DNA of 64,000 bases from Haplodiscus bocki (lineage: Eukaryota), in contig CBFHFQ010000233.1 of NCBI GenBank assembly GCA_965655095.1, positions 1-64,000 of the forward strand. Direction: 5' to 3'. The notes under the pieces were generated by a model. The model worked only from the letters and a program-made list of their open reading frames with translations. It did not search any database and was not told where the DNA came from. How positions within the stretch are numbered: position 1 is the first letter of the stretch; each line of letters begins with the position of its first letter. Shown piece by piece: positions 1 to 43,129 of this stretch. The translations under genes were made by a program, and so were the position numbers.

Positions 1-872
1 TTAAGTATTTTCCGCTTATGGAAATACTTTTGATCTTTGGTTTATGTCACTATTTATGGTGTCGGCGCGGGAATAACCACTTTGATGTCCATTTCTGACG
101 GATCGGACCCGTACCTTTTCTGTCGAAAGATGGAAAGGACGCGGTCCGTGAGGGAAGAAATGGATGGAAGAGTGTTTATTTCCCGCCAGAGTCGGCATCT
201 TTTCCTTTGTAAATAATATGATTAAAGTACTTTTCCCTATTTGTACCTTGATTTGGCGTGTAAACAATTATGTTTCCCGTCAAGGAAAGGTATAAATAGG
301 AGAAATGAAAGTACAACTATTATTATATAAATTGTTGCATTCCAGAACTGTACAATTATTAACATTTGACTGTTTGTACTTAGGAGACTTTTCCCTCATA
401 TTAAAAAGAGGAGTTTAACTGTGTTGAGGAAAATAAAATAGAAATTCAGTCTTCACCGCTGATAAAATCTTTTCCCCAAGCTTGATGGCAACGTTGAGAA
501 ATAAAAGGAAATTAGCCGCAGTTTCAAGAGAAACGCCCGAAAGTGCTAGAATTGGGAGAACACAGAACATCCTAGACCCAGAACTAACTCAGGAGTATAT
601 CTCCCAGGTTTCTGAGGAGATTGAAAGGAGAGTTACTAAAAAGCTTTCAAAGGAATTTAGCAGAACAGAGTAACGCATCTTGGGAGTCTTGTCAAAGCTT
701 GATGAGTTCCTCTTGAACCCGCAAGTTCAGACTTGTTCCGTAGCTGTTCCGGGGACATCCAGGAGCAGCAATCTAGAAAACCAGGGAACCAATGAGGATC
801 GTCCCTCAGACGATCCTGGACCTGAAGTGGGGTTTCCTTCCCCCCACTCTGGGGCGGAAGCAGATCCTCACA
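1..872 (+). mobile_element. 3' part of a (solo) LTR of a Ty3/gypsy-like retrotransposon carrying a Gag-like N-terminal ORF
   Basis: ORFs 482-673 and 680-904 share one frame split by TAA at 671-673 (MATLRNKRKL...EEIERRVTKKLSKEFSRTE*RILGVLSKLDEFLLNPQ...ADPH). The element appears to end at ...CCTCACA (872), like the TSD-defined LTRs at 21799 and 49129. The 5' end is outside the window, so the TSD cannot be checked. Confidence 0.65.
485..872 (+). pseudogene. Gag-like N-terminal fragment inside LTR, one premature stop
   Basis: Basic N-terminus followed by a helical/coiled-coil-like segment; frame stays open to the LTR end apart from TAA at 671-673. Confidence 0.55.
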
Positions 873-3800
873 GATGGAGTTTTCTTGAATTTCCAACAAC
901 ATGAAAGAAAATCCGCGTGAAGTGCATCTTGAATTAAAATGGAGTTTGAAAAATATCCAAAAAATATTGACAACTTCCTAGGAAAAATCCCCCAAACTAA
1001 ACCTAAGAACCTTCACTATATAAAAAAACTCACTCTATAAATTCACTCTTCAGCCGAGGAGGAATACCGATCCTCAAGTGCATGGTTACAAAAGACAATC
1101 TTCAAAAGAAAACGAAAAGTAGACACTAGTCGGTCTTTAGCTTTGAATTATACCCACGTAAGTAAAAGCTCTAGTGAGTGTCGAAAAAAAATCGCTGGTA
1201 TGCTCACGACAAAATCACTCTTTAAAAACAAAAACGAAAGTGAGACTTCCAATCCACGACTATGCATTACCCGGGATTGCAGACCATGGGTGGTAAGTAG
1301 TTTCAATAATTAATTCGTTTTGCACAGGGAGATGCCGCGTTGGTACCTTACAACACTGGGCTCAGGGTTTCAGAACCACCTCTGGCGAACCAAGATCTTA
1401 GCAGGCTGTTGCACAACTTATACCCGTTCTTCTAAGCACACAAGATTTCTCCCATCACTTTACAGACGTCACTGATTTCAACGAAAATAACGCCTCTGCA
1501 AAATGGTTGTTTTCACTAGATCAGAAACTAAAATATGACTGAAGTAGCTCCTGCAACAATCCACGCTATAGTGTCAAACAACGCTCAAAAACTCTGATCA
1601 AACAACTAATTAAAACGGCTCGTGGTAGCCACGAGCAGACTACCTGTCTTTAGATGCCCAAAATTGAAAAAATGCAGAGCAATATTCCTCATTTTATGTG
1701 ATCTAACTAAATTCCAGTACGAGTCTAAAATTTGTCAAATTTGTCTAACCTATTTTGATTCCTAACTTGCAAAAATATTCTACTTAGAATAAATTGAAGG
1801 TTTTAAAATGAAAACTGAAACCAAAAATTAGAAGTTGAAACTCTCAGATTCATTGAAAAGCATGAATGAAGTCATTCCGTAGTGGACTAGCCCAATTATC
1901 AGTCACTATGTCTGAAACGTACCGTGACCCAAATGCAAAATGGTCTCAATACCACCACAGTGCTCACTAGCAATTTCATTTTAAATGTCAACCTACCTTA
2001 GTCGCGAACGAAGCAAAACGCTTTAGAAGAAGAGTTATCAGTCAGAAGATTTACACATATTTTGATGCCATTTCAACTCCAACGCAAAGCAAAATATCGA
2101 ACGGTGAAGGTGGCTGCGGAAGTGGCCTTGCAAGATGCAAATTTCATAATGGCAAATGAACCATTTCTATGCAGACGCCAATGTAAAACAGCTGTCGAAC
2201 CTCAAAATTTCAAAACTTTAAATAGCTTTCCTGATAAAGCGGTACTGTTCCAGTTCTTTTTTGGCGCCATTCGCGGTCCTAGCTTTACTAAAACCAGTCG
2301 TGTCTCTGGATAACTTTTCTTTCCTAATTTAACTTTGTAGAATAACTTTCAAAAAATAACGGGAAAATCCAGTGCCTTTGTCAAAATATCACAAAAACCA
2401 ACAAAAAAACAAACATTTTATGGCTTTTCTCACTTCCTTCATAGCGTCGATGCTATTTCAATTGTCAGGTGTCCTGTGACAGGTCAAACTTTTTTTATAA
2501 CTGACGTATCAATAAAGGGGAAACAAATTATCATTTTGCGCAAGTTCTGTTTCAGTTTTTTCCAAACTTCCGTTCATTTCGCCCTTAATTTAACTGGAAT
2601 ACCGATAGGGATAGAAACTTCTTTGAGCAATTGGCTTGGAGAATCAGTAATTCCAGGTTCGATTTTAACTCTCCTGTATGGCTGCCGTAGTCAGTTTTTT
2701 TATGAAGATACTTTGACCAGACGTGAAGTCAATTAACGGAAAGATTTTCTTGCTATTGAGTAGTTAATTTGGTGTTGACTACGGAAGTTTTTGGGGATTA
2801 ACAGTTCGTTGATTACACATTAAAAGACTCTAGTTCATGTAATTTCGGCTTCTTTTGCAGTTATGTTTCGCGCATACGCAGTGGTAAAGCATTAGACAAT
2901 TTTGGGCTCTTTTGTTTCCTAAGATCATCTATCTTACACTGCGAAAAGCTACCTTCAATCATACTGAAGATTTTTTTCATGTACAAACTTGAAAAAGCCG
3001 AGAACGTCACTTCGACGCCGCCCGTAAGGATAAAAATACTCATGAGACGGGAGTTTTCGAAGTTTGAAAACTGTCAGCTCTCTGAAAAAATTGCTTCAAG
3101 CAATTCTTAAAATGAAAACAAAATTGAACTGAAAGCACAATATTCAGCCCTGCAAAATTTCGAATGAAATACGCAACATCGTTCGGAGAATGGTAACACC
3201 AAAACTCATGCAAATTTTCCATGAAACATTCACTAGGTTGCAAAATGAATAGAAAAATTCCTTATTCTCAAACTAACTTTTCGCTGAATGGTAGGAATAG
3301 CGACCACGTTTAAAAAAACTTTTGTTTTTCTTTTGTTAGGACTACATTCTGCCGTGATGTGAAACGGAAGCCCAAAAAAACACGAAAATCAATCGAATGT
3401 TTGCGAGAAAAAAACACCCAAAATTTGAGAACGGGGCATTGGTGCTCGCAGATATCTCAATATATCCTACATCTCAATTCATCACATACGTTTTTACCAA
3501 ATCAAACTTGGTGCTACCACTTTGAACACATTGAAATCATCGAAACGAATATTGCAAAAAAAATGAAACGCAGTATCTTTTCACATCTCTGGTAAAAACT
3601 TGATTAACCGGCATATGTAGAATTGCACTCAAAGTTTCACCTTCGTGTCATTGTTTTTTTATATCGTGAACTTACGCCGTCAATTCAATTTGAAAAAGGT
3701 TTCTAGCCGGCGAAACCCAGATTGCGCTCAAAATGATCAAAATTTGTGTTATAGAATGGCCACTTCGAAAAAAACGGAAAATAAAAATGATTTTATAAAA

Positions 3801-5830
3801 AATCAAACGATCCCATCTATCGAATTTTTTGGTTGCAACAGGTTATATTAGTCGCACACAGCTCGTGAAGCCATAACTTACCACATGCAACAACTTGCCG
3901 CAAGTAACAATCCGTAATTGAAATCAAAAAGCGACAAATCGCCAAAAATGGAAAGAAGCGGCAGGTCGCCAGAAAGGAGCGGGGCGACAACGTACCAAAA
4001 TATTCAAAATGACCACATTGAAGCGCACAACTAAAAATCGAGTTTAATTTCCAGCAGAGTTTTAAGGAATTAACCAGTTACACAAACAGCCATTGAGCCT
4101 GCATTACATGGATGTATATATCTATCACCGTACATGTAAGAAACCTCAAACAAGTAGAACGCATCGTCACTCGTTTGCCTCAAAAATTGCAAAAAACACC
4201 ACTTCAAAAGTTTCTACTTGCCGAAATCACTTTAACCAGCAATGTTTTTACAAATTGTTAAAGTCAAAGAGTTCAAAACAAAACATAAACCATTTGCCTC
4301 TATGAAAAACATCGTTTGTAAACAAGGCTTCCGAACTACATTAGGAACGTTCGATAACACTTGTCAACCATTATTAAACTGAAGCGTTGTTTCGACAGTA
4401 TTGTGTAAAATGAAAAATTCTGTCAATCAGTTCGAAAAACTACTGCAAAAAGGCGCGCGTTTTCAATTAAGCGTACCGGTACTTCTAATCTTTTGTAGGT
4501 AGATATTGGTTTTGACTTTTTGCAGCAACTTGTCGCTTTTCTAAGTTTGTGCCAAGATGTTGCCTCTGGGTTTAAGGGCTAGTTCTTGGTTGTGACAAAA
4601 TATCGCTCTGGGTAGGTTGTCGTAGTACCCGATCACTTGCAGTAGTACTCAGAGGTAATTGTAACAAATGGCATCTTTTCATCCCGCGTATCAGGAAACT
4701 ATTGGAAGTATTGCAATGGTTGCTGAAACTACTGCAACGTCAGGATTTATTCACCGGCATGAATGCTTTCTGAAAAACTGAGAGACGTGAACAAGAGGAC
4801 ATCTGCCAAAGTAAACTGAAGTTGGTGGATCGCAATTGAAAGTCGCCAATATTGATTGGCCCAAAAATTGCCCAGACCTTGCGATTGAGTTTTCTTTTAT
4901 GATCTTTTAGGATCTACCCGTTCGCAAGATTTATAAAATTGAGAATCTCTATCAAAAGGATGCCGCCAAGATTTTGACATCATCGCCAATTTTCTAGGTG
5001 TAATCTACTCAAATCTTAACGAAAATTTAGCGCATTGAACGCCTAATTGTCAGACAGTACTCTCCAAAAATTTTGCACCCCAAAAATATAAATTTCAACC
5101 CAGCGGAATTCTTTTTGTTGATGAAAGTTACAGAACAGCATCGGTCACACACAAGAAAGCTTTCGGTACACCGGTGAACCAACAAGATACTTTGTTTCTT
5201 TCTACCTCAGCGAGCTCTGGGTTGGAGAATCATTAAAAATGGAAAACTGTGGCATTTTAAAAACTGTACTGAAAGCAGATATTTCACTTGAAGTTGCTTT
5301 TGTAACACAACCAAAACATGTTTCACATAAAATGTGTCCTAATCAGCAAGAGTTTTTCGAATGGTGTAAAAACAGAAGTTAGGTAAAATATGAAGAAACT
5401 TCGACTGACTGATTCCTTTAGCATGTCCAAATGAATTGAAAGGTTGAGAGCCAATTCGGGTTCTTGAAATTGAACAGCAATTTCCATCTGCAGTATCTTC
5501 CACCATGTGATTATCATTCCACAGATATTTCAGCACAGCGCATTTCATCCCTGGTAATTTCTTTGGTTAAATTGGAAAGTTGACCAATCACGAGCAACTC
5601 GCAAAGTACAAAAGCGAGAGCGCTACTAAAACTCAACCATTCTCTCAAACTCTCTCATGGAAACCAGTCGTTAAGTTCGCCAAACTTTGATTATCAACAG
5701 ACTCGTCCAGATTCAATCTCGCTGAATTTTTATCAAAAATTTCCTTTCTTTATGAGGCCTGTTTCTCAAATTGTTGAGATTTTAAAATAAACTTCGAACC
5801 AGAGTTTTACAAAATTCCTTCTTTTTCACA

Positions 5831-6370
5831 ATGGCATCAAACATTAGACAGAGGACAAAAAAGTCTAAAACCCGAAAGATTCTCGACAGGGAAACATAGG
5901 AAGACATAGTAAGAATTGGGGAAGAGGCTAATCAAACCCAAATGATCGGTTTTGAAAACAACAAAATGAAACCGATCACCATTGGTGCATGTTCTATTGT
6001 CCTAATTTCTTAACTGAACCTAATCAGACAGAAAATAGATTTCAAGTGCTTTCACAACGGGTTATTGACGGTATTGAGAACTGACTCCGGAGAATTTAAA
6101 GTGCTCTTGAGAACAAACTGGCTAACGCTCCAGTTGCAATTGAGGGCTCTGTTAATTCAGATTTAGCAGAGAGCCTCAGATCGAACAACACAACAACCAA
6201 TTAGAGTGTACCTAGTGTATGACGACGAGTCAATAACGACATTGAAGAAAGCGCATCTATATTGACCAGTAGCAATGGAAATCTCAATGATCGTCTAATC
6301 CGATCACGGAAGGTTTCTGAAATAATTTTTGAAACACATCCCCCGGAGAGTGAAGGAAACAATCATCACA
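5831..6370 (+). mobile_element. degenerate 3' end of an LTR with a decayed Gag-like N-terminal ORF
   Basis: ATG 5831 (MASNIRQRTKKSK...), one frameshift and several stops, then ...ETHPPESEGNNHH ending at CATCACA (6370), the same terminus as the element ending at 63164. 5' boundary and TSD not found. Confidence 0.4.
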
Positions 6371-6950
6371 TGTAACTACGCTAATTTGGCATTCTAATTA
6401 AAAGTCTGAAAATTTAGAGTCTAAAAACAGTTGAAAAGAGCGTTTTAAAGGTAAGTCCTTTGAATTCCTGCCGTATATTGACGCAGGAGAAGAAACACTT
6501 CTAAACGTCTTGGATTTTCAATTGAATACTTGTCAAAATGATTTTCAAAAATACTCTTTTTCAAAAGCCAACATTCTGACAGCAACTGTAACGGTATGAC
6601 TTCTTTCAATTTGAGATTTTTGTGAATTTAGGTCCCTAATTTGAAAAAGAATCGATAAGTCTCAGATCACGTAGTAGGAAACGTAGGAACTAAAACCACA
6701 TTCCTCTTCCGTTAATGAAGACATGATATTCCTTTTTTGCATATCAAGTTTGATTTCTGCCAAGCTGTTCTTTGCTCGTCACTTGAGCTGCAGCTCTAGA
6801 AACTATCATTTTATTCGGAAATCCGATTTTTTTTCAGTACCAAAACTGCATATAAAAAGTTTAAGTCAATGAGGTCTTCAAACTTGAAAATTTGAAAATG
6901 AAACAAAGTTGGTTTTGAAAAATAAAACTAAAAATGCGTTTTTGTTTCAG

Positions 6951-7122
6951 AAACGGATTCTCCGAAAACTCCACCGACCACTGCCACGAACGATGTCCCC
7001 ATAGCTCTTCAGCCGATCGACTCAAGAATACCTCTAACACACGGCGAGAGATTTACTCTTCAGAAGACGTGGAAGGCCATGAATAGGCGTGGGAGTGAGG
7101 CCATCATCATGACATTTGCCAA
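6951..7122 (+). CDS. globin X-like gene, exon with N-terminal extension and A/B helices
   Basis: tttgtttcag acceptor; TDSPKTPP...QPIDSRIPLTHGERFTLQKTWKAMNRRGSEAIIMTFA(K) matches the PxDxRxPLT...F.L..(S/T)WK pattern of invertebrate globin X-like proteins; GT donor falls after nt 2 of the B12 codon (B12.2). Confidence 0.75.
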
Positions 7123-9089
7123 GTTCGTCAATCTTTTTAGCTCAATACATCTAAACAGTTTCGAGTACACGAAGTGACTGAATTAACTGATGGTCACAGA
7201 CTTTCTGATGGATCGATTGTGAAGGGATTTTAACCTTCTGGGAAGCGACATACCCCTGTCTAGAGTTTTGGAAAATTTATTATAAAACTTATTACGCCAA
7301 ATAGGTAATAACATGCATTGTCAACTACATTCGCGAATGAGAGTACGTGTACAAAGTAACTTTTTGATTCTTTCACTCTATTTCACTGGAGCGGGAAATG
7401 ACAAAAATTCTACGAATCTTTAATAAGTACAGCGGAGCTGTATCAAATTTTGTGGAATTTTGGTTTAGCGGCAGTAAAACATCAAGATAGTTAATATTGT
7501 GCTTGAGTTTGCAGCGTCTGGAGCGTCTGAAATTATGCAATTGTTTGCTAAAGCGTTAATTCTCCTTGACAAAAAATAGAAATACCGCAAAAGGACCATT
7601 AAGAAAACTACCTTAGATATCCTGTTTTTAGCTGTCGTGGAACTCCCCCCCCCCCTCCACACACACACAAATTGCAAAATTTATATCCAAAATGAATTTC
7701 AAATGAACAACGGAAAGATTCTTGAAGGTTTTTTTCACTTTTCAAAAAATGTTGAATAAAAATGCCATGAATAATCCATTATAACAGAAACACATGAAAA
7801 ATTTGAAAACATTCTCGCGACGAACGTCGCTTCGATTGATAAACTAAAACGCGATCTGCGTGATAAATAAAACTTGATGATAAGCTATCGAAACAACTCA
7901 TTTATCGAAAGGTTGCAAAAATGGCGAAAATCATTAACACAAATTCGAAAAACTGTTTTACTTCAATGCGCAACAAACATGCCGTTTTTGAAAGTTATCG
8001 ACGTCCAGAAAATTGGACAAGCTGGTGCTGTGAAAAGCTAGCCCACTGCAAACTTCTAGCACGTCGCGGGACTGCTAAGGAAGTCCTGAAGAAAACATTT
8101 CCTGCAATGTGAGGAAATTTATTATGATGAGACTCAACTTTTTTGCAAAAAATCATAACTTTCTGCCGAACAATTTGGTACAGAAAATTGGCGATGCTTT
8201 TCGTAAAGAAGTACTAATTTGACAAACGTACTATTACCACCACATCGTCGTCAGTACTGCGTCTATATTACTTCAGTGGATGACAGTACTGAGAAACTAT
8301 GTTGAAATTCGTTTTTCCATGACATTTTTGCCAAAAAGTAGACTACAAAAACTTTCGACAAAAGATATCAGAGTCTTTCCGAACCTTCTGCGAAAGAACC
8401 AGACGGCTATGCGTCATGAGGTCCAAGGTATGGGACTTCAAATTTCGAAAATTTTTCGATCTCACATAACCTGTGAAAAAAATTCGAAAAGAAACAAAAC
8501 GTCGACAATAAGGTATTCTCCTTTCACTCAAAAGCCTTAAAACATCGTGTGGGATGTAAAAAGAAAAAGAAGCACCGGCGCTTTTCGAGAAAAAAAGTGC
8601 CCCAGTATCACCATGACTTTTGTTTTTTATCCGCGTAAAACTACAAACTGTTCAAACGGTTCAGGGGCGCATCAAAAAATTCAAGAACAGTGTTACGGGC
8701 CAGGAATACGAAAACTACTTTTTAACCTATGAAAAAATTCTGTAATGGCATATGCCAAATTTACTCCAACTAAGGACTGTATCAGACAGCATATATGGTA
8801 GCAAATAGTCCTTTTATTAAATTTTTATATTTTTGACTAGATTTTTGACAAATTGCAACAATTTTTTTAACAAAATAAAACATGATGATACCAAATTCTT
8901 TTGAGCGAAAAGACCATAATTTTCAAAAACGAAAGGATTCCCATGGATTTTTTGGAATTTACGGGCGGCGCCAACTTGAGCTGTTCCCGGCTTGTTTTCA
9001 CTGGAAGCTTGTTTAAAGAAAAAAAACCATATCAATGACAAAAGCTTTATAAACCTGACATCACCGTGAAACTAATAACCTTCTGCATA

Positions 9090-9888
9090 CAGTAGTGTCA
9101 GAAAAGAAAAGAACCTTTTTTTGAATTAATACTGGAACGCTACATATATTTGCGTAATACTCATAAACAATTGAAAATCACAATTTATGTTCGAAACAAA
9201 AGTTTCTTATAATTTTCTGTAGTTTGCAATGGTGTTTGTTTTAAACTTTTAGGATCATAATTATAGAAGTTAGGAGATTTTGCACCTCTATGTATTAAGA
9301 TAGGAGGTTGATTTTGCGCCACAATTTTCGAAGTTTCAAGTACCTTCTACTCCGTTTTTGTTTACTTTTCATATACTGTTAAAATTCCTCTCATCTACTG
9401 ATTACACTCAGAAGTTGGCAGCTCCCCAGTGTTTACACTATCAAAATGGCGAGACATTCTGTAACAAAAAGTAGTCATCCCAATGTTAATACGTTGTAAA
9501 GGGTATCATTTCTTAGAGAATGTCTCGCCATTTTGATAGTGTAAACACTGGGGAGCTGCGAACTTCTGAGTGTAATCAGTGGATGACGGGCATCTTACAG
9601 TATATGAATAGTAAACAAAAACGGAGTAGAAGGTACTTGAAACATCAAAAGTTGTGACGCAAAATCAACCTCCTATCTTAATACATAGAGGTGCAAAATC
9701 TGCTAACTTCTATGATAGTGATCCTAGAAATTTCAAACAAACACCATTGTAAACTAGATAAAATTCTAAGAAACTTTTGGTTCGACCATAATTTGTGATT
9801 TTCAGTTGTTTTTGAGTATTACGCAAGTATATGTAGCGTTCCAGTATTAATTCACAAATAAAGGTTCCTTTCTTTTCCGACACTACTG
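9090..9888. mobile_element. Tc1/mariner-type non-autonomous foldback element (MITE) in a globin intron
   Basis: TA|CAGTAGTGTC...GACACTACTG|TA; inverted arms ~9090-9460 and ~9517-9888 (~370 bp) with a 56-bp spacer; TA duplication. Confidence 0.9.
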
Positions 9889-10029
9889 TACAACACACTA
9901 TTGAATACAAATTGCAAAAAATTGAATATTGAAAATGCTTTTTCGAAAAATATAAATTCCTCTGGCCATCTAAAAAAATAGCTGCATTTGTTACACGTTT
10001 ACATTGTTTATATTATGTTAATTTTTCAG

Positions 10030-10279
10030 ATTTTTCCTCAAGACTCCATCTTCGACGCAGTTTTTGGCGCGCTATTTAAGTTCACTCGGCCCCAAAGAAG
10101 TGACTGACCAGGACAAACTGACCGACTGTGACAACTTTTCAGCCCACGCAGACTCAGTTTTCGCTGCTTTTGATACTTGTGTTGAGTCTCTCACCGAGCC
10201 AAACGATTTTTTAGACCACTGCTCCACTCTTCGCAAAGAAGACTCTTTGATCCCACGGGCCAATATTGATAGCATTAAG
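10030..10279 (+). CDS. globin X-like gene, central exon (B12 to G6)
   Basis: atttttcag acceptor is phase-compatible with the previous exon; FFLKTPSSTQFL...NFSAHADSVFAAFDTCVESLTEPNDFLDHCSTLRKEDSLIPRANIDSIK; Pro C2 and His E7 present; phase-0 donor AAG|gtaata at G7.0. Confidence 0.75.
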
Positions 10280-11539
10280 GTAATAAGGTTTAGAAATTTA
10301 GATGCGTATGTGAAAACCTCAATTAATGGCAATTCTACTTTGACCTAAAAGTTTCAAAAATCATTCGCAGCTTTTTCCTTGAAAAGCTCTTGAAAAGACT
10401 TGTCATAAAAAATTGACAAAAACCGATGTTTGTGTTTTTGGGTGACAGAAAGTTAATACAAACCGGAAACTGTTCGGTGACAATTTTTCGCTTTACACCA
10501 CAAATTTAGAAGTAACAACGTTGTAATTTTTGCTCTTTATTGCTCATGACAAAAACAAATATTTGCAGTTTTGTGACTGATCATGAAAAAATGTTATCCC
10601 TTTCAACCTAATATAAAACGTAAGCGCCCTAAAGTGCGAAGATGCTCGTTTTTTGTATAGAAACAAGACCCAAAAATAAAAAGGTTTATTTTTAGGTGGA
10701 GGAGGTCACCAAGGAAAAAAACTACATTTTTTGTTAGAGAAAAATTATAATACTGGAGAAAACAATCCCAAAAAATGTAACTTAGGCTCATTCCCTTACT
10801 TGAGACCACCAGAAATGGTCTTTTTGGAAAATTTCAAATTTTTATCAAAACCTACGGAATTTGGGTAAATCTACCGATGTCAAATGCATTCTTACTTAAA
10901 AAACTGATTTGGAAGCCATTAAAAATTAAAAATTCCAAAAATTAGAGCAAAATCAGTGAGCCATTTTACTTAATAGGAAATAACTAAAAATGTCCTTTTA
11001 CGCAAAAATTTCATTGTTTTGTCAATAATTTTGAAATTTGTTTAATTTCACCGTTTTATAATCAATCCATAGCTAAAACACCAATTTGGATACCAAAAGA
11101 AGGAAAAATCAATTTCGATATTAACTAGTGCAGGCCACTCGAAAGTAGCAAAATTGTCCTATTTTTTTAAAAAAAAAAACATTAAATTTTGTCCAAATTT
11201 GTTAAACGCACATAATTTCCTTTAGTGTTTTAAAACGGTGTCACAAACAAGCAGCTGATTTGGATGGCAAAAGAATAAACAATCAAAAATTATTAGCATA
11301 AATCGCTATTTTCATCACTTCGCAACTCCAAAACTAGCCTTTTCGCCTACTTTTTTGCAACAAAAACATCGATTTTCATTCACCATTTTTGAGATTCTCG
11401 TTGTTTTTTGAAAAAAAAAGAGACTTTTTTGTACTACTTTAATTCAGCTTAGTAGCTACAAAGTTGTTTTGAATGGCAAGAAAGTGAGAATCAAACACAA
11501 AACCGCAAAATTAGCTATGTTCCCATACTTTGAAGCACT

Positions 11540-14500
11540 AACAAGCCCGTAATGCTCGAGTCCGCGCAGCCCACAAGGCATTAAAATACGAAGGGTTTCA
11601 CTTAATTGCGGGAGTAGAAACACGTGTCCAGCACTAGAATAAACAGACTGAAATGGGAAGAAATTGTTATGGAAACGGTATATCCGTCACACTAAAATGA
11701 CATAGGACTGAAAAAAAACGTGATGACATTGGAAGAAAATCCTGGAATCTTACCAAGATTACGTGGACAAGCAAATGAGAAGACATTCTACAGCGGTTCT
11801 CTGAAAATCCGACCTACAAGAAAAGCTAAAAGTCAATCGTTTGTAGCCGTTGCTGTGAATCAAGAAACTTCAAAACTTTTTTCGGATACCTTCGTTTACA
11901 ACAACACAACGCAATACAACACAACAAGCACGATAGCCAAGCAGACATTTGTGTGATTCATAGAGATCCAAACAAATCAACTGCCGATGTGCACACAAAG
12001 TTATTAGAAGCAAGAAAAACTTGAGTTCTAGAATGTAACCACAGCAGAGTTGATCACGTCGAATTTTTATCCTTGATCAAAAAAATAAACAAAGAGAGAG
12101 ATGAATAACTGAAGAAGAAGATAACGAAAAATAATTCGTTGATTCAAAAATTGATCTAACTGACGGGCATTTTTACAACAAGTTGATTGAATCTCAAGAG
12201 TCGGCTGACGAAACACTTGCTGGACACATTTCCAAAAACCACACGATAACTGACTGGACAAGACGGAAAAAGAAATCCAAAAATCCAACAAAATGGTACC
12301 CAAAACAAACAAGCACAAATTGCTGGATATGTGGTGCAGCAGACTGGAGAAGAAAAAAGATTCTTTGGCAAACAAGCATCAACGTTAATAATCCAAAAAG
12401 AAAGGCCATTAAGCTCGTAATATCAAAGCCGAAGAAATAGTAGAAATTATGTCAGACAAAAATGTTTGAAGGGCTGACGAGGACGTTGGGACTGCAAAGC
12501 AGATACACTCAGTTGCCAAAGCACCTTTCCTCCATACGTCCGTTTCTTGGTCAACAGACGACTACTCAGCTTCATTAAGCACAGTAGGTCAAACTTTTTC
12601 ATTAGTACTATACCTAATTTTGCCAACAAAGTTTCGTCAAACCAGTGATGAACACAATAAAAACATAGGTTGAAAAAACGTCATCCGATAAACAATGTCT
12701 ATCAAAAAGCAAATCCAATCGCAGAAAGATATTTGAAATTGACACCAGTATTGAAAATTTGGGACCTATATTTCAAGAGAAACAGCCTGGGGAGTTGAAA
12801 TGAATTACGTTTGCAGGCAGAACCCCACCGCAAGCTGAAGAAACGTATGCATATATTGAGCCACAATTCTTAACACTAATAAGGAGACTTGATCACTCCG
12901 CCTACACCTTTATGGTAAACTCATGGATATACTAAGGGATCCTTAAGAATTATAATCTCGATTACAGACCACCAGGTCCAGTGAATCGTATAGAGCACGA
13001 AGAACCATCTGACTTGCTCGATTAGCCTATTTTGATATCCTAGTTCTTTACAGAAAAAGAAAATTTCTAAAGCTCCCGAAACTCACGAGCTCCTTTAGCA
13101 GGCACGTACCAGGTAAGAGAATCGGTGGATGCGTAAATTTACAATGAGCAATGCAAAATTATCAGAACAATCTCACTTTTTATATCTACATCCAAAATGG
13201 TTGCCTTGGGCAAGAGCAATGGGACCAAGACGTTTGTTGACAGGAATCAAGTGAAAGTGGAGATGCGTAGACCAAATCTCATCACCATTCCTACAAAGTT
13301 GTGAATGAACAAATTCGCATGAGCCGATCACAAGCATCGAAAAAGTTACAAGCGCAGAACAAAATAATCAATAGTGGCTATGGTTCAATAAACGTGAGTG
13401 ACACAAATAACTGCCTGAAATCGATTTAGTTTTTGAAATCCGGGCAATTGAAAACCATTTTGATAAAAACGTTTGTTGTTGACCCGATATAGACTCCCAG
13501 CTACTCAACCATGTGGAAACATTGGGTCAGAGAGAAGAAATGGGGTAATATATCCTGTGATGGAATGAGATCAGTAAGCTGCCAGAACATGGCATATATG
13601 AAGGAAAATGGAAAAGATTCCACATTCCACCCACCAAAGAAACTGCAATACAAACAGGCATAGCTAGAAAACATACTTTGGCGGATCATGATTCCACTGG
13701 ACACAGAACCGTTAAATCCAGGTAGAGCAATTACAACCCTCTATACGGGAAGATCTGAACCCAGTCAACCGACACAACGCAAACCATTGCTGGATAATTT
13801 GGCGAAAGGCGACGAAGACAGCAGTAGAGATGAAACTGCCACGAAATCACTGTACAAGTTACTTACGTTGATTATTTGAGTTTTGTGCGTGGGTGTGATT
13901 ATATAACTATCCGGCAAACCATGAATCTTATTGCAGTTTGGGACTTCAATGTCAAGAAAAACCTAGTGACCAGGAGGAATTTGAACCTGCACATAAATAC
14001 TATAAAGCGCGGCAAGATGGAGACTGTACATTGAACAACGAACCTCAACAACTACTGGACACGGTGGAAGATGCCCAGTCCCCAGGAGCGGATGACCTAG
14101 ACAGACCACATCTGTCAATAGCACCAACGGGACGTGGTAAAATGAAAACCCAGACCGAAGAGACAAAGAACCTCAGAGAAAGAAAACTCATCTCCAGGAA
14201 CTCCCAATTGGACAATCAACCTGCACGATATGGCTCATGAGAAAGCTGGAGAGGCGAGTAGAGACAACAAAACATCAGGCACACTTGTTTGCTTCGAAAA
14301 AAACTAATAGTACTGTTAATGCGAGTTTTAATGCTGTATGTCTTGATGGAATTAAGCCCAGTGAAACGTTAAACTTAGTTGAATATACTGGAACGTTAAT
14401 CCCAGTATAAAGGCTGAGTAAGGATTATTTCAAGGTGGAAATAACAGGGAGTAGCCAAAGAACAGGGGACAAAAATAGGGTGAATAGGCCTTGAGCGTCC

Positions 14501-14750
14501 AGGAATCTGATTCTTAGATTGAGGAATCAGATATTTTATTTACCAGCTACATGCAGGACGATGAAAAACACAAATGACGCCAGTGAAACGATAAAAAAAC
14601 AACCATGCAGTACAACAAAGTGGATACTTCGAATGAACATTGCGTTCTTGGTTGTAGAGGCCAAAACTCATCAATTGCACTCTTCCCTCCAGTTTAGGAG
14701 GGAATGTAGAGAAGTTGATAACCTAATAATCTTTGTAACAGCTCAGCTTT
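11540..14750 (+). mobile_element. degraded, internally deleted Ty3/gypsy retrotransposon
   Basis: Gag remnants (~11720-12440) including a decayed zinc knuckle CWICGAADW...KKGH*A; RNase H remnant ~12736-12950 (IDTSIENLGPIFQEKQPGELK*ITFAGR...AEETYAYIE...LHLYGK vs consensus DAS..GLGA.L.Q....IAFASR...AE..Y...ELE...LYG); PPT AGGAGGGAA 14696-14704 followed by TG. Boundaries approximate. Confidence 0.7.
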
Positions 14751-14927
14751 AGGTAATTTTTTTTCGAAATTATGTATCAACTCTTTCTGATGATCTCTAT
14801 AGTATAAAGTATGCCGACAAGTTGTACGTTGTTTTAAGTAGAAAAGATCACTCATATGAAAGTATTCAACGACTAATTCTTTTGTAATAATGCAACATTC
14901 CTATTCGCAACATGTTTTTCTTTTAAA

Positions 14928-15125
14928 AAAACTAGATTTTTTTCATTGAAAGCATATAACGACTCATGTCAAATAGAAGATTCTTTCGCTGTTGAACAGT
15001 GAGAGAATCGAAACCAAATATGGAGAGTGTACTGCTGGTTTTAATTCAGTGATATGGTGAGCGAAAGTTCAGCATGTTTGAAAGCTGATTTCTCAAAGCA
15101 CAGCAATTTTATAAGAACGCAATAA
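14928..15125 (+). pseudogene. probable degenerate last globin exon (G/H helices)
   Basis: KTRFFSLKAYNDSCQIEDSFAVEQ*ENRNQIWRVYCWF*FSDMVSE... resembles G/H helices with a Trp near H8; in-frame stops at 15000-15002 and 15042-15044; polypyrimidine tract upstream but no in-phase AG acceptor. Confidence 0.4.
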
Positions 15126-15641
15126 CAGCTGAAGTCTCCAAGTCTTTTTATAGAAGTTTATTCGTGTTTTTTTATTAGACCAAGAATTAAAAAGTTATAG
15201 TTACCCTAAAATGGGCCAATTTCGGCCAAATTTGAGGTTTCTATCAAATCTCATCATCTACGCAGGATACATAAAAATTCCGGAACAATTTTTTTAGCTA
15301 TGAATCTCGCCTTGAACATCTCATAATAAGGATTTTTTGAGAAAAAATCATTTGAAAATTTCACGGTTATGAAAGAATATTCTATGCTATGCAATATTCT
15401 AATGCAAGTGAATCGCATTTTAGACACCTTTAAAAACCTTTAGTTTCTAAAGCGTTAAATTATTTCACCAAGTTCAAAAACATGCGGTCGGGGATTTCTT
15501 GGTGGACCTAACTAATGGAAAAAATGCAATTAGCATGAATTAACTCCTAAAATAATGGAAAAAGAGAAAAATGGTGAGAGAGTCTAAAAATGTAATTCTG
15601 AAACTCCTTGAATCTTGGTCTGATATGCATAATGTAGAAAC

Positions 15642-16020
15642 TAGTGTTTGGCGGTTAACCGGACCGAACCGACGTTCAAAATCAAAACCGACAATTTAAG
15701 TTTTTAATAGGTGAAGCAGCGATAGTCGAAATTGGCTAATTTTTAGAGACTAATCCCAATCACCCAGTGACAATTACTCATAGCCATTGAAGAAGGATGG
15801 AAGTTTATCTCGTAGAAAAAATTGATGCTTCACAGCGAAGCAATCTCACTTTGGAAAGCCGCAGGTTGCAGGTTAATGCTTGCTACAAAGAAAAAAGTTC
15901 TGCAAGGATAAAAATTTTTGTTCCAACTCCTGAAACTGAATTGAACCGATACCGAACCGATTTTTTCAGAAACCGAACCGAACCGAACCGAAAAGATTTT
16001 TCCCGAACCGCCGAACACCA
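15642..16020. mobile_element. hAT-superfamily MITE
   Basis: 15-bp imperfect TIRs TAGTGTTTGGCGGTT / AACCGCCGAACACCA; perfect 8-bp TSD GTAGAAAC (15634-15641, 16021-16028); subterminal AACCG repeats. Confidence 0.92.
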
Positions 16021-16649
16021 GTAGAAACTTTCTTAAAATTATTGAAATTCTACGAGACTTTTGCTTTTACCACTTTTTTCTAAACCTCTTACTTTATGAG
16101 TTTTTGACCCTTACAAAGGCCCATTTTTGCTCAGAAGTTCACCTAATTAAAATCGATACTGTATAATCTATGAAAATCCTGATACCGTATTTTGAGTTGG
16201 TTGAAAGAAAACCTTAAAGCCACAGACTCAAATGTCAACAGTTTATTGGAAAATAATATGCGTTATGTATCGTACTGATGGTTATAGGCATTGCAGTTAT
16301 GGTGGAAAAAGGACAAATACAATGGAAAAGTAGGAAAAAAATCAATTAATGCCCCAATTTGGTACAGAAGCTTTACACGGGATGACAATTGAATTCTGTA
16401 TTGACGAAACTTTTCAGTGTTTATGTTCTACTACACAACGATGCAAAATAATCACCGTAGCCGTTAAATGCAGTTTTGGCCATAATGCCAACAATTCTTG
16501 TCCTAATCAAATGAATATTTTTATAGTTTCAAGGTTAATTTGCTATCCTGAATAGTAAATTAAAAGCTAATTTGGCCTGTTGGTTTATCGAAAAATTCAC
16601 TCCAGGGGTTCAACTGGGGATTGTTTAGTGAGGGAAATTGGAAATTTAC

Positions 16650-19600
16650 CGAAGGAATGTATCGGTGAAAGTCAAATTTGTTTGCAAACACTGCTGCCCA
16701 TGAATGGCGGAATCGGGTTCCTATTTCCGGACCCAACAATTCTTCTAGTCTAACCTAGTGAAACCATTCCAGGCTAAAACAATTAAGAAATAATTTTTGG
16801 GTAAAAGGGTTATTTTCAGAAAACTTAGAAGAGTCCTAAACAAAATATCATTCAGCATTTCTTGTTGTTTTCAAACTTGGTTGTTTTGTATCATCTGCAA
16901 GAAAATCAATTTTTTAAATGCAGAGTGAAAATATTCGTGAATACAACTTTCACAATTATTTTTTCAATTGCCATTGTAGTGGTGTTCCAATATCAATTTG
17001 TTATTTATTTTTTAATGAAATTTTGTCAAATTTGACTTTTCAATATAAATTTTGGTTGAAAATTTTTCACGGTCTTTAGTTTGGTATCACACTGCCGTAG
17101 ATATTGATCTCAGTCAAGAAAAAGTTTTGCAATTTGCTTCAGGATTTCGAGAGTTGCTTCCTCGACGTGGTTGAATACATTCTGGAAGACAGGTACAATG
17201 ACAAAGTGCGGGGTATTTACTGGAAGTTTTGGCCATTCTGTTTCAGCAAGATGTTTCCAGCCATTTGACAGTCTTTTAGAAATTTATTTTGAAACAGCAG
17301 CTCCACAAAGCAACGGACGCAGTGACGACGGTGCATTCAATCCAATTAATTTGATCTATATCCTTCCAGTTTATGTATTGGTTATAACTGAAATTTAATC
17401 GGACTCATTCATATCAATTGACTACATTCATGTTAAAACAGAATTTGCAGTAGAGATTTCGATGTCTTCAATAATTTCTATTTAGTATTTGTAGTTTTGA
17501 GTATCTTGTGTTAACGTCTTCTTGCTGAAGATATAGTAGACCAATTAGTTCAATGCTATAAAGTTTTAATTGGGTCTCCAATACACAAATGTTGGCACCT
17601 CAGGTTTCGTCATTCCCGTACTGTTGCGGTCATTCGACAGTAATTGTCATTTTTAGCTGTCTTTTTGGAATCGAATTATTTAGTGTCGAAAGTTGCACCA
17701 AAACTAATTAGACGCGAAAATATTAACATTGAATAGTTTTGTATAAGGTGCAAAAATTTATTTGAGATTCAAAAACGTCTCATACTAATTGCCTAAATCC
17801 AGTGCCAATTAGCTCTAATTATAATGCAGAAGTAAAGTAGGACCAGCCAACAACGTTAAATACCATTCCCAAACAATTTTCGGCCAGTTTTTAAAAAGTA
17901 GAAACGGCAGCCAGCCTTGTCAGCTCCGAAATCAACTGGCTGTGCCTGAGTTGTTCCGTTTTTGATTTAGATATATTGATACCTGCCTTGAGGAAAAGAT
18001 TCAACAATAGAAGCAGCGGTACTGCGATGTATCCATCAAAGGGGATAGAAATAATTGATCGAACATACAACAAAAGTTTGTCACAACATTTTTCACTAAA
18101 TAGAAGGGTGTCGACTGAGAGTTTCTCGGGCGAAATCAAGCCGAGAGCTTTCAAAACAATGAGTTTGATCATGGACAAAATAATAGCAACAATTCGATTA
18201 CTCGACATAATCAGAGAAATTCAATTCGAAGACCCCTTTACAAAGAAAACGCTGTCAATTAATTCCTCATTGCAAAAGTTCATTTTTTTTCTTTCGCAGG
18301 AACTTGAGTTTGATAACCGAAATGTGTCATTGTTAATAACGTTTTTGGCCTTTTCGACTTTTCAGGAGTCAATGATGATTGCTCACTTGAAAAGTCCTCC
18401 TCGAAAAAAGGGTTAACGACAGAGACGGTGAAGAAGGATTTGAACATTTTGTTCTGAAGAAAAATGAATTAAAACATAAAGCGAAATCAAAACGTTTTGC
18501 TCTTTTTGGCATGCGGGTATAATAGAACCAGTTGTTTCAGCAAAAAACATATACAAGGTCTACTTACTTGTTATCTTTCATTTTTAATCATTACAATACA
18601 CTTTTACACATTGATTTATAAGTTTAATTGAGTTATTTGGAAATTCTTAAAAGTTTCAAAAAGATCCAAGAAGTTTTCCAGAAACATTTTTTTAATTAGG
18701 TCAGAAAAAATAGACCTTTTGAGAACAACGATCGATTAAAAAACATGAATTTTACCGCAATAACCATGTTCTTTTGCTTTTCACAATTGAGGGGATTGAA
18801 AACAAAAGTCGGAAAGTTGATAACAAAAATGTTCGTACAGAGAAGCAAACCCACTACCTGTGAGCTACCTAGCGGCGCTGTCACCACACGAAAGTAAAAG
18901 ACAATATTTTTATATGTATTTGACCGCGGAGTCAAGAGTTTGTTATTTGTACAAAATTATACAAACTTTATCAAAACGTGTGATTTTTTTTCAGGCGTTT
19001 TCCGATTTTTTTTGAAAAAAACTTGAAACTTAAGCCGGAATACTGGACAATGTCCAAAAAATCCATTTTCCTAAATTTTTCCTCATGAAAAAATCTTGCG
19101 AATAAACCTCTAAGCGACAATAAAACAAGCAAAACCTCTGTGAAGTTGATAAAAACTCAAAAAGGCGAAAAAATGATTCGTGGTAGCGGCATTGAACTTG
19201 GAATTGTTATTCACAGCTGATCTTTCGCGAATTAGCACTACTTTAAAGAAGTCACGTGGGATGTCGATAAACTGACGCGAGAAGTTACTTTGGTGAGAAA
19301 AGTTACACAGAACTAACAAATGAGCAGAGGAGAATTTAACGAATTACTTTAGGCCGGTATTGTCGAAACTGCGCTCTACTTGTCCAGGGGAACATATTGA
19401 GTTATTCCTTCACTTTTTTGGACTTTCAGTAAAAACTTTCCAGCTAGGTCATCAAAACGGCATTCTACATGACCAGTGGAACATTTTGAGCTACCATAAC
19501 TTTTTTTGAAAATTGCAGTACGCAGCCAGATCTGGAAAACCAGCGGAAAAAGGTCTACTTACTGAAGGAATGTTTTTCCTTTCGAGATATATTACGACGG

Positions 19601-21204: not shown

Positions 21205-21404
21205 NNNNNNNNNNNNNNNNNNNNNNNNNNNNNNNNNNNNNNNNNNNNNNNNNNNNNNNNNNNNNNNNNNNNNNNNNNNNNNNNNNNNNNNNNNNNNNNN
21301 NNNNNNNNNNNNNNNNNNNNNNNNNNNNNNNNNNNNNNNNNNNNNNNNNNNNNNNNNNNNNNNNNNNNNNNNNNNNNNNNNNNNNNNNNNNNNNNNNNNN
21401 NNNN
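21205..21404. other. assembly gap (200 N)
   Basis: run of N. Confidence 1.
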
Positions 21405-30858: not shown

Positions 30859-33800
30859 AGGCTTGAGAAACAACTCACTTGAGATGTACCAAGAAACTGA
30901 CCAAAATTTTCGGGTCTTTCACTCTTCATTTTATATCGAATTCTACCATTTTTCAAATGTTTCGAAGGTTGATGCTGCTTTTGACTTACGGGCTGAATTA
31001 ACTTCAAGTCAAATCTTCTCCAAAATCTCTTCATAAATACTTCAGTTCTCCAAGAATAATGGATATGATTTTTTGCTGAAGTAGTATGTGACAATTTGCG
31101 ACAAGTTTTTTGGACAGAAATCGGAATTAAAAACTTATTGAACACAGTTATTGCGTTTTTTAGGAGTGAAAGCTGTTCACGCAACTGCGTATTTTTGGTA
31201 ATTGCATTTTTGTGATCACAATAATTTTATAAAAGTCAACCAATCAATTAAATTCTAAGCACTAAAATAGGAAACTTATATAAATGCTGTTTATATTCTG
31301 ATTACATTGCATCCAAAAAAATAGCCTCGAAGAGGTAATGGATACCGAGTGGTGAAAACCAGCTGTGATTGTTAAGTCGCTGCTCGCTCGATGGTCCTCA
31401 TGGCTGAAATAGATTTTTTATTAATTTTTACCCCCTCAAGCCGGTGCGTTTCAAATGTTTGCACAATTCCTTCTTTTTTCACATGCTGTAAGAGCAGAAT
31501 ATATCCCCTTTGTTTGTTAATATATTTAAAAAAGTCTCTGATTCAAAGAAATAATCCCCTGACGGGACTCGAGTATCGAAGCACAGAAGAAGAAAGTTTT
31601 ATTGACACCATAAATTGACAAAGTGGGCTCAAGAAGTAGCCTCTTCGAGAAATCATTCAAAAACAAAATGGTCTGGAGGCTTCAAATATGCTATTTTTGG
31701 CAGTTTGAACATGAAAACAAAAACTGCTGAAAATTTGCATGTGTAACGTCTTACATTTACGTTAAAGTCATATTCACGTCAATTCAGCACGCAATCACCA
31801 AACTAGGAAGTTTTTGAGGAAGCAAACTCTGTTGAAATTAGCACATTTCAATTGTTTTTGAATTAAGCCAATCAAAAAATAATCAGAACCCATACAAAAA
31901 AGTCTATGATGATCTAGACTGCCTTTCTCATGGTTAGGTAGAAATAAAGGCGCAGAAAAAGTTTGCGCTTGGGTTTCGAGTATAGGCACCCAACAACTCA
32001 GATCAGCCTGGCACCAGGCAGGAGAACCTCCTGCTTTACACAAAACTCAGAGACGATACTTGAAAAAAATCGGCTCCACGCAAAATGTAAGCGTCACGAA
32101 AAAATATAAATTCGAATGGAAAAAAGGGTAACATCAGTCACATGCTTCTCTGCCGTTCTTTATTTCTATAATTGTGCCACTAAACACTTTTGGCAAGAGT
32201 AAGGGCAGCATTTTGAAAAAAAGCTGAAATTTCAGTGATTTTCTGCAAAAAAGAACGTTTTTCAGAACGTTTCAACTTCAAAGAAATTCCAACAAAAAAA
32301 ATTTATTTCTGAAATCAAGAATACGTTGATAAGTAGGGTCCAAACTACCTTATGCTATAATCTATCTGCGCAACAAACACAATTTTTGCCGAAGTAGTTG
32401 ATTTTCTGATTAAAAACATAACTTTCGGTCAAATTTTCGATAATGGGGATATTTTGCAACTTCCGAGGGTCTCTCAGACGCGCTAGAAAATTTTTAAGAC
32501 ACATTCATGCAGTTGACAGGGATCTGAAATACTCATTTGAGGTACTACATTTGAGAAAGCACCATTTTAGCAGGTAAAAATTTCCTACTTTTCACGTAAT
32601 TCCAGCAAAAAACATGACGGTGGAAATTTTTTGGAAACTTTTTCGGCTAAAAATCAGTCCGGAGTCTTTTGGATTCCAATTAGAACACAAATCCCTATAG
32701 GTGCCATAGGCACCGACACATAAGCGCTTTATGACAAATTTTTTGATCGATGTCACAAAATCTGCGAAAAAATGAAAAAAAGCATCAGCTCAACTAACGT
32801 TGGCCATGGGTTTCGAGTAAAAAATCTTAAAAAACAAATTGTGAAATTATTCCGCCAATTTTAACTTTTTTGAAAGCCTACTTTCCTCCCAAGTTGTACA
32901 AATGGCAGAAGAAGCCGAAAGTTACCACTTTTTAGTATATCCGGCAAATACCACAACTTTCCCCGAAAAAATCGGCATTAAATTTTACTCCTGGAATGGA
33001 AACCCCACCTAACTTTTCTCACTGGTCAAATGCCACATTTGAACAGCTGGTAGTGGCACTTTCCACGAGAAAATTTATTGGAAAAAATTGACAACATCTT
33101 CAAAGTTACTGCAATATTTGGGCTGAAACTGCCTCTGTCCCCCTTCACATTCAAGACATTTTGAGAACTTTACAGACAATGCCTTGCAGTTATCGATTTC
33201 CTCAAAAAAATTTCCTTTCAGAGTATTTTCAGAAACCAAACTCTTGAGAAGCAATCGAGGGGAAAAAATCTTTCGCTATACACAATCTTGATACATGGGG
33301 ATTGAGTTAACAGTTCAGTTTTCTCTCGATCGCGTCTTGGGAGTTTCTTAAAAATATATACTTTTACGGTTACTTTTGTTGGCACGTTTAAAAGCCAAAC
33401 TTATTAAAATTGTCTGAAGCTGACCGGTAATGGAGCATTGTTCACACTCTAATTATGTCATGTTTCAAAGAACAAATTTGATTTCAAAACTTCCTTTTCA
33501 ACGTTTTTGAAGCAAAAAAAGTATCACCGCTACCACTTTCCTGCAGACAATTTTGCTGTTAAACGCCTAATGTTTCAAGGCATGTCAATGCGTTTACTGC
33601 ACAATTTCGATAAGTAACAAATTGAAACACGATCTGACTTTTGTAGAAGGAGATTCATTTTTGAGTGTAAAAACGGGTTTGAAATTTCGCTGCCATTTGA
33701 CTACTGTGTTCCAACAAGCAGCAACACCCTGACCCTATCCACTTGATCGACTTCCTTATCACGAAAATAAAAAACAAGACTGCGGATGTACGCCAGATAC

Positions 33801-42929: not shown

Positions 42930-43129
42930 NNNNNNNNNNNNNNNNNNNNNNNNNNNNNNNNNNNNNNNNNNNNNNNNNNNNNNNNNNNNNNNNNNNNNNN
43001 NNNNNNNNNNNNNNNNNNNNNNNNNNNNNNNNNNNNNNNNNNNNNNNNNNNNNNNNNNNNNNNNNNNNNNNNNNNNNNNNNNNNNNNNNNNNNNNNNNNN
43101 NNNNNNNNNNNNNNNNNNNNNNNNNNNNN
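42930..43129. other. assembly gap (200 N)
   Basis: run of N. Confidence 1.

Follow-up and report, generated by a model that had tools for sequence, protein, structure and literature searches.

INTRODUCTION

In haem globins, the proximal histidine (His F8) and Phe CD1 are regarded as almost invariant. Here, we describe a gene in the first 64,000 nucleotides of contig CBFHFQ010000233.1 from Haplodiscus bocki (assembly GCA_965655095.1; referred to as the window) that is predicted to encode a globin-superfamily protein of about 180 to 190 residues, with Asp at F8 and Leu at CD1. The gene was unannotated. At least four exons are implied, and three were located: exon A (6951 to 7122), exon B (10030 to 10279), and exon C (17143 to 17268). 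Coordinates are positions of the whole window, unless another locus is named, and the gene lies on the + strand. Counterparts were found in two other acoels, Symsagittifera roscoffensis and Convolutriloba macropyga, and the three genes are treated below as one family.

The closest solved relatives of this family are cytoglobins (Protein Data Bank [PDB] entries 6q6p, 1umo, and 1v5h), with E values of 1.4e-7 to 2e-5 and about 20% identity over helices A to G. The likeness extends to the spacing of 32 residues between E7 and F8, the C2 Pro-Ser motif, the residues Q-Y preceding CD1, and introns at B12.2 and G7.0. Cytoglobin, a hexacoordinate haem protein, differs in having Phe at CD1 and His at F8. 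Compared to cytoglobin, the CD-D region of the acoel gene is 6 residues longer, and the gene ends right after helix H; the C-terminal extension of cytoglobin carries a further intron. The only solved chain that was aligned nearly full length (residues 27 to 174) is the "Globin protein" 5ziq/5zm9, which we take to be the tardigrade hexacoordinate globin known as Kumaglobin. It shares a very similar pre-A/A-helix motif, D.R.PLT...F.L.K.WK, but it binds haem and has His at F8 (GRQH versus RNED or RKED in the acoel proteins).

An earlier note on this DNA had labeled the gene globin X-like. The two have in common that they are animal globins, that the N terminus is extended, and that introns are found at B12.2 and G7.0. 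Globin X genes contain the extra introns E10.2 and H10.0, and their His E7, His F8, and Phe CD1 are strictly conserved (PMC3206486). In the acoel gene, neither of these extra introns is present: exon B spans B12 to G6 without interruption, and exon C does the same from G7 to the stop codon. Globin X proteins are also acylated at the N terminus (Gly2 and Cys3), whereas the acoel orthologues start with MPFKKKKK and do not contain the Gly2/Cys3 acylation motif. With both of these features missing, and with cytoglobins as the best solved relatives, the label is not supported.

Globin folds in which the proximal His is replaced are found in RsbR-type sensor globins, phycobiliproteins, and photoglobin, where the pocket accommodates a fatty acid or bilin; all of these named non-haem families are bacterial, cyanobacterial, or algal (PMC8717448, PMC7475203). 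They lack the distal His, while His E7 is kept in the acoel family, and no sequence relation between them and the acoel proteins was detected in a Pfam scan with E values up to 10. The acoel family has instead branched off recently from animal haem globins. Engineered proximal-ligand mutants of myoglobin, such as H93Y (PDB 1hrm), show that a globin with a residue other than His at F8 can fold and sometimes retains its haem. These are laboratory mutants of a haem protein, whereas in acoels the F8 change arose naturally, is ancient and fixed, and goes together with the loss of Phe CD1. Of the traits by which animal haem globins are recognized, the acoel family displays the B12.2 and G7.0 introns but neither His F8 nor Phe CD1.

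RESULTS

Globin homology and assignment of the haem-pocket residues

Full-length analyses were run on the natural orthologues from S. roscoffensis and C. macropyga. Both exceeded the gathering score of the Pfam Globin family (PF00042; cutoff of 22 bits), with 23.2 and 24.0 bits. Exon B of the window gene alone scored 15.8 bits (E = 0.021), which is below the cutoff, and exons A and C alone had no Pfam match. Scanning an orthologue against Pfam with E values up to 10 yielded only Globin and a subthreshold, chance-level match to Med11. When a profile of the family was compared with solved chains, cytoglobins were matched at E values of 1.4e-7 (6q6p) to 1e-4 and 5ziq at 4.9e-5, with alignments extending over helices A to G/H. 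Lamprey, shark, sea-cucumber, and annelid haemoglobins were matched more weakly, and neuroglobin chains were also among the matches.

Two independent HMMER alignments, to cytoglobin and to 5ziq, placed K/N/S-E-D of the family on K-A-H and R-Q-H, putting Asp at the position of the proximal His. In the same alignments, Q-(Y/F)-L was matched to Q-Y-F and S-A-H-A to R-K-H-A, which assigns Leu to CD1 and His to E7. These alignments were gap-free from E7 to helix G, and the distance of 32 residues from E7 to F8 equals that in cytoglobin. The F8 Asp is followed after 13 residues by a phase-0 intron, as is the case for His F8 and G7.0 in myoglobin, and the Lys codon split by the preceding intron was aligned to cytoglobin Arg48 (B12). 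The two introns are thus located at G7.0 and B12.2. For the cytoglobin and myoglobin positions, including these spacings and the identity of Arg48 with B12, we assumed the customary helix numbering. The positions B12.2 and G7.0 are the predominantly conserved intron positions of globin genes (PMC7771090).

In the window gene, the CD1 codon is TTG (Leu; 10064 to 10066), aligned to cytoglobin Phe60, and the residue is Leu in all three species. The E7 codon is CAC (10145 to 10147) within SAHAD, part of the invariant motif FSAHAD. Helix F reads STLRKEDSLIP. At F8, the site of the proximal His in haem globins, the codon GAC (10241 to 10243) specifies Asp; all three species have GAC here, and the Glu just before it, at F7, is invariant. 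A His-Cys pair at F0/F1 (10217 to 10222), read directly from the sequence as (D/E)HC in all three species, marks the start of helix F. The earlier note had described two phase-compatible exons with globin introns at B12.2 and G7.0, a retained distal His, Asp at F8, and Leu rather than Phe at CD1; splice sites, phases, alignments, and residue spacing bore out each of these points.

Further support for a globin fold was provided by the pattern of hydrophobicity in the profile alignment. Residues at the buried template positions A8, A12, A15, B6, B10, B13, B14, E4, E8, E11, E12, E15, E19, F4, G5, G8, G12, G13, G15, and G16 (template list from PMC4527676) were hydrophobic, and Cys occupied the buried positions E18, F1, and G11.

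Relatives in other acoels

An exhaustive phmmer search with exon B against 1.84 billion representative proteins returned a single cluster, XP_063713986.1 (E = 2.7e-26, 65% identity). This is the RefSeq "uncharacterized protein LOC134841873" of the acoel S. roscoffensis. A word-index search with this protein added a second relative, the RefSeq "uncharacterized protein LOC142335308" of C. macropyga; neither protein has a precomputed Pfam domain. Word-index searches with the S. roscoffensis protein and with the family alignment, at E values up to 10, recovered only these two acoel proteins and no nearer paralogue with His at F8. The word-index protein search with exon B, whose length window does not cover full-length proteins, gave no candidates, and metagenome scans revealed no relatives.

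Both relatives' genes are made up of four coding exons distributed over 30 to 34 kb. The first encodes MPFKKKKK plus one base and is followed by homologues of exon A (in phase 1), exon B, and exon C. The phase of the exon A acceptor and the positions of the B12.2 and G7.0 introns are identical in the window, S. roscoffensis, and C. macropyga. All three genes have Asp F8 (GAC), Leu CD1, and His E7. Likeness between the loci was confined to the exons at both the DNA and translated levels; tblastx of the window against the two relatives' loci revealed the three exons alone, and no neighbors were shared within the flanks. The three genomes are therefore deeply diverged. As its product is missing from the protein collections, the window most likely represents a third acoel.

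Selection on the family and accuracy of the sequence

Substitutions were counted exon by exon according to Nei and Gojobori for 167 codons, including the split B12 codon, completed here with the first base of the intron (Lys in all three species). The proportion of synonymous differences (pS) ranged from 0.76 to 0.78, meaning that synonymous sites are saturated, whereas the proportion of nonsynonymous differences (pN) was 0.11 to 0.17 (Fisher P = 1e-29 to 1e-39). Per site, nonsynonymous change was about 5 to 7 times rarer than the saturated synonymous change, and neither a stop codon nor a frameshift was present in the three-gene comparison. The nonsynonymous distance (dN) from the window gene to either relative was 0.19 to 0.20, compared to 0.12 between the relatives.

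Across the three species, 116 of the 166 aligned residues were invariant. Among them are Leu CD1, His E7, Val E11, the Glu F7-Asp F8 pair, LIP downstream of it, and the His-Cys pair at the start of helix F. Conservation was strongest in the pre-A/A-helix segment, which contains 33 consecutive invariant residues, and the stretch VPIALQ...NRRG of exon A was 100% identical in all three species. Despite saturation of synonymous sites, exon A differed from its S. roscoffensis homologue in only 2 of 42 residues. Helices G and H were the next most constrained, and the F helix and CD-D region were the most variable.

The accuracy of the window sequence was evaluated using Logan contigs of four runs, which derive from two samples of one study. 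All four covered 9861 to 10400, comprising the GAC codon and the whole of exon B, with 0 differences. Two of the runs also matched 6800 to 9115 without differences; the other two displayed one unitemized one-letter gap in that region. As the assembly may itself have been built from these runs, what they exclude is a slip in the consensus; independent biological replication is provided by the two orthologues.

The F8 replacement is thus an old, fixed, and selected trait of the family, which is under strong purifying selection. The shared replacements, purifying selection, and matching contigs taken together led us to reject both a pseudogene and an assembly error, the latter having been considered by the earlier note for the GAC codon. 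The same note had left open whether the locus is a pseudogene or a divergent globin. The second option stands; the first was discarded in view of the open exons, shared residues, and purifying selection. A small residual doubt applies to the window copy, owing to its unfound first exon and to the absence of the locus from the RNA runs.

Structure of the gene in the window

The N-terminal extension, helix A, and the part of helix B that ends at B12.2 are encoded by exon A. This exon opens in phase 1 behind the acceptor tttcag|AA, and its donor, AA|gt, splits a Lys codon between the second and third bases; its translation terminates in ...VPIALQPIDSRIPLTHGERFTLQKTWKAMNRRGSEAIIMTFA(K). The B12.2 intron (7123 to 10029) has GT...AG boundaries. 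Exon B follows the acceptor tttcag|A, contributes the last base of the split Lys codon, and encodes helices B13 to G6 with CD1, E7, and F8; its translation is FFLKTPSSTQFLARYL...NFSAHADSVFAAFDTCVESLTEPNDFLDHCSTLRKEDSLIPRANIDSIK. The exon closes at AAG|gtaataag in phase 0. The G7.0 intron (10280 to 17142; GTAATA...CAG) is 6.9 kb long and contains A-rich inserts.

Exon C, which encodes helices G7 to H, was located by tblastn of the relatives' proteins on the window. It is 79% identical to both acoel relatives (E = 1e-20), follows the acceptor tttgcttcag in phase 0 with GAT as its first codon, and ends with the stop codon TGA (17266 to 17268). The earlier note had ended the locus at position 15125 and missed this last exon. 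Nothing globin-like was found in three frames between 14900 and 15125, where phase-0 acceptors run into TGA. In total, about 180 codons are open and four splice sites are intact in the window copy.

The phase-1 start of exon A requires an upstream exon with the initiating Met. As intron 1 measures 5.8 to 7.4 kb in the relatives, the first exon of the window gene may be situated beyond the start of the window. One candidate, ATG GGN G|GTAAGT at 1286 to 1292, was unsupported.

Repeats and neighboring open frames

The B12.2 intron of the window gene harbors a foldback element of about 800 bp (9088 to 9890). Its outer arms (9118 to 9379 and 9597 to 9858; 262 nucleotides) are 91% complementary, and its inner arms occupy 9380 to 9468 and 9509 to 9597. 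Summed contig depth over the element was 1e4 to 4e5 in all four runs, compared to about 11 to 40 in the single-copy flanks. The element therefore belongs to a very-high-copy repeat family in this genome.

Within the G7.0 intron, the stretch from 11700 to 14400 is A-rich on the + strand (AT skew of 0.225). It contains several open frames of 80 to 113 codons without a Pfam match and is probably a decayed insert. Pfam searches with the open frames within and beside the gene likewise gave no match. Downstream, 630 bases past the globin stop codon, a 173-codon open frame (17895 to 18413, + strand) has neither a Pfam match nor a counterpart at the relatives' loci. The window also contains two runs of 200 N (21205 to 21404 and 42930 to 43129).

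The S. roscoffensis locus displays a repeat of its own at the start of the G7.0 intron, where a 61-bp unit is repeated 20 times with 90% identity (30992 to 32211 of that locus). In its first copy, the unit represents the genuine 3' end of the exon, with the Asp F8 codon, and the GTAAGC donor; later copies reach into the intron, several with in-frame stops. This array is absent from the window, and none was seen in C. macropyga.

DISCUSSION

We consider it likely that the locus encodes a functional, lineage-specific animal globin-fold protein, which would have lost canonical haem ligation and would use its pocket or surface for another purpose. The two residues that canonically hold haem are replaced as a fixed trait of the family, His F8 by Asp and Phe CD1 by Leu. 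Without both, five- or six-coordinate haem binding of the canonical kind would most likely be lost, and if so, the protein would be neither an oxygen carrier nor an oxygen store. Its pocket or surface might instead interact with a different ligand, a metal, or a protein partner. The mechanism that we rate highest, with confidence about evenly balanced, is that of a binding or regulatory protein that does not carry oxygen and is haem-free or only weakly haem-binding. The main alternative to it, retention of haem, another tetrapyrrole, or a metal by unconventional ligation, appears rather unlikely.

The distribution of conserved residues is unlike that of oxygen-binding globins. It points to a conserved surface or partner interaction, with the pocket apparently placed under different constraints. 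The relatives also have in common a conserved N-terminal extension, in which the polybasic MPFKKKKK is followed by a proline-rich stretch.

Several observations weigh against this reading. With its invariant E7 His and Val E11 and its largely hydrophobic interior, the pocket could still bind a tetrapyrrole. Structure prediction was of little help, as the AlphaFold model, built from a shallow five-row alignment, had a predicted local distance difference test (pLDDT) score of 38 and is unreliable, although it was all-helical with six helices in the expected order. Globins made up 49 of the 50 top Foldseek rows obtained with this model, the best E value of 0.14 not being significant. Saturation of the synonymous sites precludes a branch-specific ratio of nonsynonymous to synonymous change for the window lineage. 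None of the RNA runs holds the window locus, so expression and splice junctions are unconfirmed there. Finally, no convincing Met exon was found in 1 to 6950 by fuzzy DNA matching to both orthologues' first exons, by searching for K-rich peptides, or among all ATG...N|GT candidates, which leaves the completeness of the window copy unproven.

Among the explanations that compete with a globin fold freed from canonical haem ligation, the one that fares best is a haem protein with noncanonical ligation. Haem would be held by the E7 His alone, by the His-Cys pair after a register shift of helix F, or by the carboxylate of Asp F8, possibly via water. Such a protein would be in line with the invariance of E7 His, E11 Val, B10 Phe, F4 Leu, and G8 Phe, all of which are shared by the three species. 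The invariant (D/E)HC is located 7 to 8 residues ahead of F8, and helix geometry suggests that Cys F1 and F8 share one face of the helix. In addition, myoglobin tolerates swaps of the proximal ligand, as in H93Y (1hrm). However, the residues holding haem at F8 and CD1 were lost together, and in all three hidden Markov model alignments, the F8 position was taken by Asp and not by the upstream His, with no gaps. Were the upstream His the ligand, the E7-F8 spacing would shrink to 24 and the F8-G7 spacing would grow to 21, compared to the usual values of 29 to 32 and 13. The low quality of the structure model also denies this explanation structural support. On balance, we regard noncanonical haem ligation as improbable.

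A second explanation concerns only the window copy, which could be a recently inactivated pseudogene of a functional family, for instance after loss of its first exon or promoter. The failure to find a MPFKKKKK-like Met exon in 1 to 6950 and the lack of the locus in any RNA run would be expected in this case, and the window branch is the longest at nonsynonymous sites (0.19 to 0.20 versus 0.12). A longer branch is also expected, however, if the window species is the outgroup, and the relatives' first introns are long enough for the missing exon to lie past the window start. Recent inactivation is difficult to reconcile with some 180 open codons, four intact splice sites, and an exon A that deviates from S. 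roscoffensis in only 2 of 42 residues while synonymous sites are saturated. We judge it very unlikely.

The two remaining explanations can be virtually dismissed. A sequencing or assembly error at F8 would require only one base, GAC for CAC (His), but the contigs of four runs from two samples agree with the assembly, and both S. roscoffensis and C. macropyga likewise have GAC at this codon. A chance likeness of a helical protein to globins might be argued from the subthreshold score of exon B, the missing matches of exons A and C, and the poor structure model, but it is contradicted by the Pfam scores of both full-length orthologues, the profile matches to many cytoglobin, haemoglobin, and neuroglobin chains, two introns at the exact canonical positions and phases, and the predominance of globins among the Foldseek rows.

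If the protein has indeed been released from canonical haem ligation, the parts of its pocket allow a more specific, and tentative, suggestion. The acoel genes may represent the first non-haem (or non-His-ligated) globin family in animals, a cytoglobin-like offshoot specific to acoels whose pocket has been retooled for another cofactor or ligand. The retooled site would comprise His E7, the acidic pair Glu F7-Asp F8, the His-Cys pair at the start of helix F, and the buried Cys residues at E18, F1, and G11. Candidate ligands would be a hard metal ion, a tetrapyrrole that lacks iron or has an open chain, or a lipid. In non-haem globins, the residue at the proximal position helps to define the ligand, being Tyr in phycocyanin (bilin) and Arg in RsbR-type proteins (fatty acid) (PMC8717448). 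By analogy, and as speculation, a cation or a polar head group would be a fitting partner for the invariant Glu-Asp pair. Both S. roscoffensis and C. macropyga are photosymbiotic, and given such hosts a role in handling algal tetrapyrroles is conceivable, although equally speculative.

Surveys of animal globins require His F8 for inclusion (PMC4527676), and a family like the acoel one is consequently filtered out by design. Literature phrase searches found no precedent for animal globins without the proximal His, which is not proof of absence. The gene model presented here adds a missing gene to the genome of the window species and offers a functional lead for two RefSeq entries described as uncharacterized proteins. 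Three natural sequences are at hand for expression and spectroscopy. If the proposed function is correct, the globin fold would, in animals too, have been recruited to a role that is independent of haem or relies on its unconventional ligation.

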